This document shows positions 61,630-64,000 of a stretch of DNA of 64,000 nt, in pieces; position 1 is the first letter of the stretch; every line of letters begins with the position of its first letter. Both the position numbers and the translations under genes were made by a program. The stretch lies in sequence record NC_070882.1, one strand, 5' to 3'. The notes under the pieces were generated by a model. The model did not search any database. It was not told where the DNA came from and saw only the letters and a program-made list of their open reading frames with translations.

Positions 61630-61902
61630 ATGTCACCTGTGATCCTACTTATTGTTTCACCGATATTAACCGTCGTGATGTATGTATTGGAACTGAAGCT
61701 CCGTGAGGAGTACAGAACGGCGCACTATAAACACTTGTTACGTTTAGCCGGACAGAACATCAAACCGAAGTTAATAAAGCAGTCTATAGAGTATTCTGAG
61801 ATTGCATTGACCCGATTGATCCATACGTTCGTAAAGAAATGTTACTTGGTATTAGCTTACTTTACGCTGACCATGTTCGTAATCGCTGCATCCCACATCT
61901 AA
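61630..61902 (+). CDS. Small 2-TM membrane protein
   Basis: GAGGA RBS before ATG 61630; hydrophobic N- and C-terminal segments. Confidence 0.7.
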   Translation: MSPVILLIVSPILTVVMYVLELKLREEYRTAHYKHLLRLAGQNIKPKLIKQSIEYSEIALTRLIHTFVKKCYLVLAYFTLTMFVIAASHI

Positions 61903-61912
61903 GGAATTACAA

Positions 61913-62215
61913 ATGAATACATCTCCCGCTGCTCTCCCTTTCCCCAACCTAATGTTCCTCCTTCTGGTAATTGTTATAGCAATTCCCGTTGTGGCATACA
62001 TCTATCTACCTTATGCTGCACTGGCTATTTCAACAGGTGTACTAGCTGCATGTACCTGTGTTTTAGGTATCGGTAATGCACTAGTTGATCCAAATGCCTG
62101 CGATACACCTAAACACTGGAGAGAGTATCGTTATTATCTAATCGCTGGATTTGGGTTCTTCACTGTTGCTATGTTCGCAGCAGCTAATCTCAAATATGCA
62201 TTTAAGTTCATTTAA
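61913..62215 (+). CDS. Small 3-TM membrane protein
   Basis: AAGGA RBS; three hydrophobic stretches. Confidence 0.7.
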   Translation: MNTSPAALPFPNLMFLLLVIVIAIPVVAYIYLPYAALAISTGVLAACTCVLGIGNALVDPNACDTPKHWREYRYYLIAGFGFFTVAMFAAANLKYAFKFI

Positions 62216-62219
62216 AGCC

Positions 62220-62227
62220 TATATTAC
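62220..62227 (+). promoter_or_regulatory. Early promoter
   Basis: TTTAAAGCCTATATTAC. Confidence 0.75.
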
Positions 62228-62262
62228 AACTGTGAATATACACCCACATAAAGGACAATGTA

Positions 62263-62457
62263 ATGGCTATTATCACCAATGTATTTGCTTTCGCTATCAT
62301 CACTCTGTTCATCGTCTTTTTCCTGAAACAGGGACTTGCGGTCATGGGTGTCAAAACGAACCACCTGCCGATTAAACTGGCTAAAGCTTTCAATGCATCT
62401 GGTCCTTTGGCAGCAATCCTTCTTGCCGTATACTTGATCATGGCAACCTTTTTATAA
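62263..62457 (+). CDS. Small 2-TM membrane protein
   Basis: AAGGA RBS; 64 aa. Confidence 0.7.
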   Translation: MAIITNVFAFAIITLFIVFFLKQGLAVMGVKTNHLPIKLAKAFNASGPLAAILLAVYLIMATFL

Positions 62458-62477
62458 CATCTTTCTGAGTTGATACC

Positions 62478-62666
62478 ATGGGATGGATTGTACTGATACT
62501 CACCTTCTTCGCTTCTCTTACGGTTGGAGGTGTAATGACTTTCTATGGCTTGGTAGCTAGTAGTAAAACCTTTTCAGATAGAATCTCTATGGTTCTATTT
62601 GGCGTAGTTATTATTGCTATCACCGGCTATAGTGGATATCATTTATTCGACATGCTTCCAAAATAG
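62478..62666 (+). CDS. Small 2-TM membrane protein
   Basis: 62 aa, hydrophobic hairpin. Confidence 0.65.
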   Translation: MGWIVLILTFFASLTVGGVMTFYGLVASSKTFSDRISMVLFGVVIIAITGYSGYHLFDMLPK

Positions 62667-62674
62667 GAGTTAAC

Positions 62675-62935
62675 ATGGATTTGATGTTTACTAACCCAAT
62701 AGCGTTTATTTACGGGACACTTAGCTTTCCTGGACTACTGTTCATGACTGGCTATGCTGTATCGTGGTTGTTCGTAATGGGTGTATGCAAGTGGCTTCCT
62801 AATTGGAAGTACCTCTGCATGTTCCTCTGCGTCAGTTGGGCAATTAGCTTTGCGATTTATCTAGTAATGATCATTACGGCCCTGGTTAGCGTGTATACCC
62901 CTCTCCAGTTACCGCCGTGGACGCTCATGAACTAA
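62675..62935 (+). CDS. Small multi-TM membrane protein
   Basis: AGGAG RBS; 86 aa, almost entirely hydrophobic. Confidence 0.7.
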   Translation: MDLMFTNPIAFIYGTLSFPGLLFMTGYAVSWLFVMGVCKWLPNWKYLCMFLCVSWAISFAIYLVMIITALVSVYTPLQLPPWTLMN

Positions 62936-62948
62936 CAAGGAGTTAATC

Positions 62949-63188
62949 ATGGAAACCATCATGCTGATCTGGTGGATCTCTATTTCGATTATCGCTGGGT
63001 CCCTGTTCGTAGCAAAACTGGTAAAAGATAACGATGATGTTCGTCGAACTCGTTTACCAAAGAAAGATATCATCATGCTCGACCGCATTAATATGATTTG
63101 CACTGCTCTCATATGGGGAGCTGCTATCGTAGCGCTGATCACTCTCTTCTTGGGTGGTCTTTTCATGATGATTGAAGCACAAGTGTAA
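62949..63188 (+). CDS. Small 2-TM membrane protein
   Basis: AAGGAG RBS; 79 aa. Confidence 0.7.
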   Translation: METIMLIWWISISIIAGSLFVAKLVKDNDDVRRTRLPKKDIIMLDRINMICTALIWGAAIVALITLFLGGLFMMIEAQV

Positions 63189-63193
63189 GACGG

Positions 63194-63226
63194 CATAAAG
63201 CTCCTACCTTCGGGTAGGAGCTATGC
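63194..63226. terminator. Bidirectional terminator
   Basis: CATAAAGCTCCTACC-ttcg-GGTAGGAGCTATG. Confidence 0.85.
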
Positions 63227-63236
63227 TTTATTTTTT

Positions 63237-63659
63237 TTATTTTAATCCAAGATCTTTCTCGATTTGTCTAGCTTGCGATGTACTTTGAATAGCCTTCGAC
63301 TCTGCAAGTTCAATCATGAACAAACAATCATTAAAGGGTAGTTCAAAGAACTCTAGTAAAGATAAACCATAAATGTCATTGATCTTGTAATTGACAAACT
63401 TCCGTATCCAAGTTCTTTCAGGTCCACCTTCTACGACGTTTTCCTTAGGATGCATTCTAACCAGATCTAAAGGATCAGCCTCTGGTGAATCATGATCGAA
63501 AATACCGTAGTCTTTATGGTAGGCCTTCCTGGTCAACATTTCGGCAATAGCTGGCCTTACGGCATCTAGCGTTCGCACGAGTTCATCGAATGCACTCTTA
63601 CCATTAACAGTCTTGCGACCGAAAGAGTTCATTGTAACGTGCCCGTTGTCGTCCTCCAA
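63237..63659 (-). CDS. Conserved protein, possibly the C-terminal (T-like) part of a frameshift fusion
   Basis: Frame open up to 63806; no RBS-supported start; YGLSLLEFFELP helix pattern. Confidence 0.65.
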   Translation of the reverse strand: MEDDNGHVTMNSFGRKTVNGKSAFDELVRTLDAVRPAIAEMLTRKAYHKDYGIFDHDSPEADPLDLVRMHPKENVVEGGPERTWIRKFVNYKINDIYGLSLLEFFELPFNDCLFMIELAESKAIQSTSQARQIEKDLGLK

Positions 63660-63697
63660 ATTAATTGTTAGACGACTATGCCGGGGGTCCTCGTTGA

Positions 63698-64000
63698 TTA
63701 CTCCAGGTGCTTGGCTTTCTGGCCCGCCAACGTGAAAAATATTGCCATCATGTCTAGCGGTACAAGGTGCGGGAAACGTTCGTTGAATGCTTGGCCCTGA
63801 GGACCTTTACATTCTTTGCAGTTATGCGATGGAAGAGCTACCACAGCCAGTACACAAGAGTTAGTATACTCATGTACGGTATCAAAGAACTGTTCCGCGT
63901 ACTGCGGATCACTCAGAGTGTTCGCCAGATAATCACTAATGATTTCCTGATCGTCGGAAAGCAGTTGATCTTCGAAGTCTTCTACATCGTCGTCCTTTTC
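63698..64000 (-). CDS. Partial conserved protein, C-terminal 100 aa (tail/baseplate-assembly chaperone-like), truncated by the window edge
   Basis: Translated by hand: ...LPSHNCKECKG...LVPLDMMAIFFTLAGQKAKHLE*. Confidence 0.7.
   Translation of the reverse strand, partial: EKDDDVEDFEDQLLSDDQEIISDYLANTLSDPQYAEQFFDTVHEYTNSCVLAVVALPSHNCKECKGPQGQAFNERFPHLVPLDMMAIFFTLAGQKAKHLE

Follow-up and report, generated by a model that had tools for sequence, protein, structure and literature searches.

A -1 frameshift in the tail assembly chaperone genes is conserved among tailed phages, with the G/GT pair of lambda as the familiar example (Xu, Hendrix and Duda 2004, as cited in PMC9024508). In dnaX, structural barriers in the messenger RNA (mRNA) flank the site of the -1 shift (PMC4344849). 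T4 gp26 and gp51 are listed in a review as hub assembly chaperones, and gp51 is absent from the particle (PMC3004832). Here we describe a gene pair, gp080 and gp079, of Pseudomonas phage vB_PaeM_PS119XW (NC_070882.1), a jumbo phage of the genus Pawinskivirus with a genome of 301.5 kilobases (kb). The window that was analysed consists of bases 1-64000 of this record (64,000 nucleotides, nt), with 100% identity at matching coordinates over the 2 kb at its right edge, where the pair lies on the minus strand. Both genes are labelled as hypothetical proteins in NC_070882.1. An initial annotation of the window, made from the sequence alone, had proposed that a -1 slip on a T run fuses gp080 to the downstream open reading frame (ORF) as a G/GT-type pair.

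We propose that gp080 and gp079 form one recoded gene on one transcript. Most ribosomes would translate gp080 in the zero frame and end at the TAA at 63700-63698, giving a major product of 533 amino acids. In a fraction of ribosomes, phenylalanine transfer RNA (tRNA-Phe) would slip back by one base on the in-phase TTT TTC (63739-63734). The A-site TTC or TTT would re-pair perfectly with TTT. Re-pairing of the P-site TTT would be complete at the 30 of 57 loci with a T in front of it, and the other loci would keep two of three pairs; the A_TTT_TTC of PS119XW is one of these, with perfect re-pairing in the A site. Shifted ribosomes would then read 165 more codons in the -1 frame to the stop at 63237-63239. 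The resulting minor product would be 687 amino acids long and would consist of gp080 residues 1-522 followed by a 165-residue extension with a flexible linker and a small helical domain. Comparative sequence evidence indicates that a gene common to phiKZ-like giant phages almost certainly yields a second, longer protein, which every public annotation checked has overlooked. That the trans-frame protein is made, and mostly by ribosomal slippage, we consider probable on the same kind of evidence. Three points are our inference: a ribosomal origin of the slip, its occurrence in only a minority of cases, and a function for each isoform.

The phiKZ-like jumbo phages, which include nucleus-forming phages and their relatives, are heavily studied models and candidates for therapy. 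With the frameshift recognised, a family that counts more than 1100 representative clusters in public data would receive a corrected annotation, and the proposal predicts a specific protein of 687 amino acids. It would also add a recoding event to a phage group for which none was found reported. The initial annotation knew of no frameshift report for phiKZ-like phages, and we likewise found no report of frameshifting or recoding in these phages in the full-text literature; most subscription-journal papers lay outside the search, and an earlier report is possible. For the phiKZ gp77 family the analysis yields a first clue to function, a possible role as a chaperone in hub or tape-measure assembly. 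If the putative function suggested by the predicted models is correct, conserved frameshifts in morphogenesis genes would not be limited to small genes of the G/GT type.

The gp080/gp079 junction and its conservation

The product of gp080 belongs to the phiKZ gp77 family (PHROG 4585), with orthologues that include PHIKZ077 of phiKZ, 074 of PhiPA3, gp136 of 201phi2-1 and gp47 of EL. Homologues were found by tblastn in 214 phage records. The gene ends at TAA 63700-63698 on the minus strand, after the C-terminal peptide that the initial annotation had quoted. The -1 frame is uninterrupted from 63806 to its stop at 63237-63239 and overlaps gp080 by 109 nt. An A-TTT-TTC run occupies 63740-63734, in phase with the gp080 codons. 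The gene end, the overlap and the run are all as the initial annotation had described them.

Junctions were compared in three sets. The first comprised 16 GenBank phages, inspected explicitly and ranging from 88% down to 18% protein identity; these were Pseudomonas phages (PS119XW, HPP-Temi, PhiPA3, Phabio, 201phi2-1, KTN4/phiKZ, Viktualia, D6, Noxifer and Psa21) and phages of other hosts (Xanthomonas LucasX, Ralstonia FLC1-1B, Erwinia Desertfox, Serratia PCH45, Salmonella SPFM2 and Bacillus AgentSmith). The second was a scan of 51 loci based on a hidden Markov model (HMM), including 36 loci from uncultured contigs in IMG/VR. The third consisted of six divergent GenBank phages (Halocynthia JM-2012, Vibrio pir03, sm033, Yong MS31, Cronobacter CR5 and Klebsiella FBKp24). 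Counts given over 57 loci refer to related loci that include downstream sequence.

A homologue of gp079 was present in the -1 frame at all 57 loci, and at every one of them this frame was open across the upstream stop, with an overlap of 46-238 nt. The -1 relation is kept throughout despite many insertions and deletions (indels). A run of five to seven T's providing an in-phase N_TTT_TTN was found at 56 of the 57 loci; the single exception (locus L034) retains a T5 run that is displaced by one codon position. The initial annotation had suggested examining orthologues for the overlap and the T run, and their recurrence (57/57 and 56/57, respectively) gives strong support to the -1 slip that it had proposed.

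Heptamers in the 51-locus scan were TTTTTTT (22), ATTTTTT (10), GTTTTTT (9), GTTTTTC (5), ATTTTTC (2), TTTTTTC (1) and TTTTTTA (1), and in the six divergent phages TTTTTTT (2) and TTTTTTC (4). A full X_XXY_YYZ heptamer is thereby found at 30 of the 57 loci (24 TTTTTTT, 5 TTTTTTC and 1 TTTTTTA). Runs of only five T's occur in PS119XW, HPP-Temi, the Noxifer group and L034. The Bacillus phage retains the run with a different encoded dipeptide, which points to selection acting on the nucleotides. Measured from the T run, the zero-frame stop lies at a variable distance (24 to 132 nt), and the -1-frame stop always at 149-176 codons (151-176 in the 51-locus scan). The upstream protein has 533 residues in gp080 and 489-720 in relatives.

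Within the window, 69 other stop-to-stop ORFs of at least 150 codons served for comparison. Five of them have a -1 frame that is open for at least 100 nt across the stop. An in-phase T5 run within the last 60 nt was seen in none of the 69, and neither was the combination of the two features. The significance of the gp080/gp079 arrangement comes more from its conservation in 57 of 57 relatives than from its rarity within the window. From one genome alone, a 109-nt open -1 frame with a T5 run would not compel, and a chance overlap or a sequencing or assembly error might be suspected. The arrangement is, however, identical in seven near-identical isolates and present at 57 of 57 loci across distant lineages, which leaves such an origin with a negligible probability. 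The two-frame layout is native and conserved in this core gene of phiKZ-like jumbo phages, and no disabling stops, frameshift mutations, insertions or deletions were seen in it.

In a separate comparison, PS119XW and HPP-Temi share 77% identity over a 2-kb region, yet they differ at only two positions in a stretch of approximately 90 nt (within 63640-63750) that holds the T run together with the zero-frame stop. The near-identical stretch takes in about 37 nt past the stop that code in the -1 frame only, and so exceeds what a single frame would need. Positions of the features discussed here and below are collected in Table 1.

Table 1. Features at and near the gp080/gp079 junction of PS119XW (window coordinates)
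Feature	Position	Strand	Remarks
gp080 zero frame, 3' end	63698..64000	-	533 amino acids; full gene 63698-65299 of NC_070882.1, cut by the window edge
Dual-open stretch of gp080	63698..63806	-	109 nt including the stop; both frames coding downstream of the T run
Shift-prone run A_TTT_TTC	63734..63740	-	In phase with gp080 codons 520-522 (Ile-Phe-Phe); proposed tRNA-Phe -1 slip site
Arms of the pseudoknot proposed in the initial annotation	63703..63730	-	Present in PS119XW; no support as a conserved element
-1-frame extension	63237..63734	-	165 codons + stop (63237-63239)
Stretch annotated as intergenic	63633..63697	-	65 nt; protein-coding in the -1 frame, judged from sequence comparison
gp079 as annotated	63237..63632	-	131 amino acids, PHROG 12109; C-terminal four fifths of the -1-frame extension; ATG not conserved
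GC-rich hairpin between convergent gp078 (+) and gp079 (-)	63199..63222	.	Perfect 10-bp stem; tail rich in T on the plus strand, short and T-containing on the minus strand

Coding signature and start codons of the -1 frame

In order to examine coding in the -1 frame, 31 unique Pseudomonas-type sequences were codon-aligned in that frame and the mean pairwise difference was calculated at codon positions 1/2/3. The interval between the zero-frame stop and the annotated ATG gave 0.40/0.32/0.62 and annotated gp079 gave 0.47/0.39/0.65, so that the third-position excess is the same in both. The overlap with gp080 gave 0.43/0.35/0.43, which is flat, as expected for dual coding. Mean amino-acid identity among the 31 sequences was 50% in the stop-to-ATG interval versus 38% in annotated gp079. 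By this signature, the supposedly intergenic 65 nt code for protein in the -1 frame.

The only candidate starts for the -1 frame in PS119XW are TTG 63659 and ATG 63632. Neither has a well-placed Shine-Dalgarno site, and the sole GGAGG (63656-63652) ends 19 nt ahead of the ATG; the statement of the initial annotation that no start is supported by a ribosome-binding site therefore stands. Methionine occupies the column of ATG 63632 in 8 of the 31 sequences and is absent from 23. Upstream of the T run, no ATG, GTG or TTG was found in the -1 frame in 38 of 42 unique junctions, and in no junction was there one with a Shine-Dalgarno-like site. Five junctions, two of them phiKZ-type and the others from Desertfox, AgentSmith and locus L042, have no -1-frame start codon for 150 nt past the stop. 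These results bear out the doubt about an independent start that the initial annotation had expressed.

A profile search of 1.84 billion proteins recovered 1141 representatives of the extension family. The best 150 of these are called at 80-186 amino acids, many of them starting inside the conserved domain. Because of the coding signature, the absent starts and the scattered called starts, independent initiation cannot explain the conserved N-terminal third of the extension. In phiKZ (AF399011 71442-71902) the extension is annotated only as PHIKZ076.4, of 80 amino acids, and 218 nt after PHIKZ077 are left unannotated though homologous to the conserved -1-frame region. The Desertfox record draws two coding sequences with a 136-nt overlap. 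In all 23 GenBank records inspected, the gene pair is entered as two unrelated hypothetical proteins, and the downstream start is placed inconsistently.

The annotated alternative is that gp080 and gp079 are two separate genes, with gp079 starting at ATG 63632 or TTG 63659 and with the T run and the open frame as by-products of a conserved Phe-Phe motif and compact gene packing. This reading can point to the ATG that is present in PS119XW, to the methionine of the eight sequences and to the 77 gp080 homologues and best 150 extension-family representatives, none of which is a fused protein; T4 gene 26, with its nested product 26', also makes a free C-terminal piece conceivable. It has to contend with the loss of that ATG from 23 of 31 sequences, with the poor placement of Shine-Dalgarno sites at both candidate starts in PS119XW, and with 65 nt ahead of the ATG that code in the -1 frame and show more conservation than gp079. 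Near the beginning of the conserved region, several lineages lack any start codon. The -1 relation holds at 57 of 57 loci in spite of many indels, and the length measured from the T run is constant where the position of the zero-frame stop varies. We regard two independent genes as distinctly improbable.

Stimulatory elements and the nature of the proposed slip

The 70 nt after the T run were folded and compared with shuffled sequences in 16 lineages. In most of them the natural sequence was no more stable than its shuffles (z = +1.0 in PS119XW), and no consistent structure emerged; the RNAalifold consensus contained 0 pairs, and Rfam returned no match. No GGAGG-like run that could act as an upstream Shine-Dalgarno-like stimulator was found within 20 nt before the T run in PS119XW. 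The initial annotation had drawn a possible pseudoknot after the run. Its arms are indeed present in PS119XW, but as a conserved structure it was rejected: 66.7% of cells were paired, against 66.3% in shuffles, with no covariation and with the empty RNAalifold consensus already mentioned.

In D6, Psa21 and Noxifer, a long-range stem begins 3-5 nt past the T run and encloses the zero-frame stop (z of -2.7, -3.3 and -2.3, respectively). The arms of the Noxifer stem show paired changes relative to D6, as judged by eye. RNAalifold did not find this stem shared by other lineages, and any stimulator would thus be lineage-specific.

Between gp080 and gp079 the analysis found neither a promoter-like nor a terminator-like site, and a strong hairpin follows gp079. 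On these grounds, and because no stimulator was found, a single transcript and a low to moderate efficiency of shifting are to be expected; with no stimulator the efficiency could be low.

The same long protein would arise if the phage or host RNA polymerase stuttered on the T run, so that in a subset of mRNAs one frame runs on into the other. Transcriptional slippage would suit the homopolymeric nature of the conserved T run, the unusual multisubunit RNA polymerases that phiKZ-like phages have of their own, and the negative search for an RNA stimulator of ribosomal shifting. Five T's are short for polymerase stuttering, and the run has only that length in PS119XW, HPP-Temi, the Noxifer group and L034. 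Moreover, the phase of the run, kept at 56 of 57 loci, and the full X_XXY_YYZ pattern at 30 of 57 are relevant to tRNA re-pairing and not to a polymerase. Slippage during transcription is less likely because of the short runs in several lineages and the conserved phase, and we consider it unlikely overall.

Several findings weigh against a ribosomal frameshift that joins gp080 to the extension. No natural in-frame fusion was found among the 77 gp080 homologues, of which the four that exceed 600 amino acids are extended N-terminally and not C-terminally, nor among the best 150 of the 1141 extension-family representatives, the longest of which has 186 amino acids. If Phe-Phe were needed for structural reasons, the constraint of coding in two frames would by itself preserve the T run. 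The PS119XW heptamer is imperfect, with A as its first base and only five T's, and there is neither a conserved stimulatory structure after the T run nor a Shine-Dalgarno-like stimulator before it in this phage.

Known systems, predicted folds and neighbouring genes

The upstream protein of G-type pairs has approximately 100-150 amino acids. The jumbo-phage pair would resemble lambda G/GT in having a -1 shift on a slippery run near the end of the upstream ORF, in yielding a short and a C-terminally extended form that share one body, in an isoform ratio that is apparently set by shift efficiency, and in being conserved in divergent phages beyond sequence similarity. It differs in an upstream ORF that is about four times larger (533 amino acids), in its location among RNA-polymerase, helicase and virion genes and not between tube and tape-measure genes, and in the lack of a sequence or fold match to chaperone families, its role in tail assembly being putative. 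Neither a tube gene nor a tape-measure-sized gene was found around gp080/gp079, in the interval from 56 to 76 kb of the record, which is the answer obtained for the position relative to the tape-measure gene that the initial annotation had asked about. Its G/GT-type label was rejected on size (533 amino acids and not about 140), on synteny, with no adjacent tube or tape-measure gene, and on family membership. True membership in the lambda tail assembly chaperone family would account for a minor product that a -1 shift, close to the 3' end of the upstream ORF, extends at its C terminus, and it would agree with a possible link to tail or baseplate morphogenesis. Pfam, PHROGs, NCBIfam, PDB and BFVD all lack a tail-chaperone family match, and together with the size of the upstream ORF and its distance from tube and tape-measure genes this makes membership very improbable. 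The expression logic is analogous to that of lambda G/GT, not homologous to it.

The dnaX tau/gamma system (PMC4344849) offers a second parallel: in bacterial translation, tRNAs slip singly or in tandem on a stretch of identical bases, and two isoforms of one protein result. There the shift shortens the product, whereas the jumbo-phage shift would lengthen it, and no stimulator was found in the jumbo-phage case.

Searches, alignments and models were made for the zero-frame part and the -1-frame part separately. Neither the gp080 part nor the extension had a sequence match in Pfam, NCBIfam or PDB. The PHROGs matched were 4585 and 8054 for the gp080 part and 12109 and 7580 for the extension, all of unknown function. 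A confident AlphaFold model of gp080 built from 52 homologues reached a predicted local distance difference test (pLDDT) of 84.6 and a predicted template modelling score (pTM) of 0.82, with residues 1-47 disordered. Four cysteines (301, 308, 494 and 497) are invariant in the family. Foldseek found nothing below E = 0.8 for this model in PDB, and no solved structure of the gp26/gp51 family was found there. In BFVD the best matches were jumbo-phage orthologues, followed by more than 15 proteins of about 250 amino acids annotated as 'baseplate hub assembly protein, bacteriophage T4-like', 'baseplate hub subunit' or 'baseplate hub assembly chaperone'. These hub-protein matches had E values of 5e-5 to 1e-2, probabilities of 0.99-1.0 and target-normalised template modelling (TM) scores of 0.45-0.59, with predicted models on both sides of the comparison.

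Sequence comparison gave a weaker signal. PF12322 (T4_baseplate) matches T4 gp51 and gp26 at 4e-52 and 9e-64, respectively, and had no match in nine members of the gp080 family even at E up to 10. Compared as single sequences, gp080 and T4 gp26/gp51 gave probabilities of 1.5-2.3%. With hhalign, the gp080-family alignment scored a probability of 5.9% against a 12-sequence gp51/gp26 profile, and 14.5% with E 0.0019 over 101 columns against a 100-sequence profile. Since the profile-profile comparison is not significant, the relation of gp080 to gp26/gp51 is a fold-level lead and not established homology. The comparison with gp26/gp51 that the initial annotation had suggested proved useful as a lead: the predicted gp080 fold matches T4-like hub assembly proteins, a match that the sequence profiles (5.9-14.5%, not significant) did not confirm.

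The extension is modelled with about 40 disordered residues as a linker, with two helices of weak prediction and, at residues 105-161, with a helical domain that is predicted confidently. Its only fold neighbours in Foldseek were uncharacterised jumbo-phage orthologues. Against the T4 gp26/gp51 family profile the extension scored a probability of 0.2%, which is not significant, with the best local match on the gp51 C-terminus; the resemblance of its distal helical motif to gp51, noted in the initial annotation for gpT/gp51-type regions, is not significant. In that weak alignment, the conserved C-terminal helices of the extension (63237-63400) are paired with the conserved C-terminus of gp51 (alignment columns 220-249). 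The C-terminal region of gp080 aligns weakly with the N-terminal half of the T4 family (the 14.5% match), collinear with the match of the extension, which may be coincidence.

Judged from the predicted models, T4 gp26/gp51 may be the nearest protein relatives of gp080. Apart from the matching fold annotations, the two families each have conserved cysteines. T4 gp51 is absent from the particle and the gp77 orthologue of phage Churi is listed as non-structural, and T4 gene 26 also gives two products, 26 and 26'. On the other hand, 26' comes from a nested coding region and not from frameshifting, and the jumbo-phage protein is twice as long, has a family-specific N-terminal part of about 190 amino acids, falls below the Pfam model and is not significant in profile-profile comparison. 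T4 genes 26 and 51 themselves (NC_000866 115802-117228) are divergent neighbours and PF12322 paralogues, with 26' annotated as a nested product of gene 26. Acinetobacter phage Berthold has a gp51 homologue whose annotation reads 'tape measure protein assembly chaperone'.

A role of the gp080 body as a T4 gp26/gp51-like hub-assembly (tape-measure) chaperone is plausible from the models, though we hold it tentatively. If so, the two isoforms would be a morphogenetic chaperone pair made in fixed ratio, and the extension would supply an extra binding domain. The Churi orthologue of phiKZ gp077 was detected by proteomics 15 min after infection and is listed as non-structural (PMC11849849). Its detection indicates that the orthologue is translated, and the listing fits a non-virion chaperone. 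In 201phi2-1, gp135 and gp136 carry no mass-spectrometry note in the record, unlike gp138. No functional study of phiKZ gp77 was found in the full-text literature, most subscription-journal papers being outside the search. The functional proposal is weakened by the lack of a Pfam match, by profile-profile probabilities of only 6-15% and by the detection at 15 min in Churi, which fits a late tail-assembly role poorly.

A broader hypothesis is that a two-isoform strategy, in which recoding fixes the ratio of the bare body to a body with an added C-terminal binding domain, is ancestral and universal in the hub/tape-measure chaperones of contractile-tail phages. Lambda G/GT, T4 gp26/26' and gp77 with its extension would then be three implementations, and the 687-residue protein would be the missing tail/baseplate chaperone of phiKZ-like phages. 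We consider this speculative and rather doubtful. Were it true, production of the 687-residue protein would depend on host ribosomes, and phiKZ-like phages are known to modify host ribosomes.

The neighbours of gp080/gp079 between 56 and 76 kb of the record comprise genes for RNA-polymerase subunits, a helicase and virion proteins as well as six small hydrophobic ORFs, and relatives keep the same synteny. Outside the window, gp081 (NC_070882.1 65311-65769; 152 amino acids, phiKZ gp78-like, PHROG 14050) lies ahead of the gp77-like gene, on its strand, in all relatives that were inspected, and its counterpart is a putative virion-associated protein in the KTN4 record. The gp081, gp080 and gp079 reading frames look like one conserved operon, and the hairpin at 63199-63222 is probably a bidirectional terminator that ends their transcript. 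Between the helicase gene and gp079, positions 61630-63188 of the plus strand hold six successive small ORFs, gp073-gp078, of 62-100 amino acids each, all strongly hydrophobic and membrane-like. Relatives carry a variable set of small genes at the position of gp073-gp078, on the strand opposite to the gp77-like operon.

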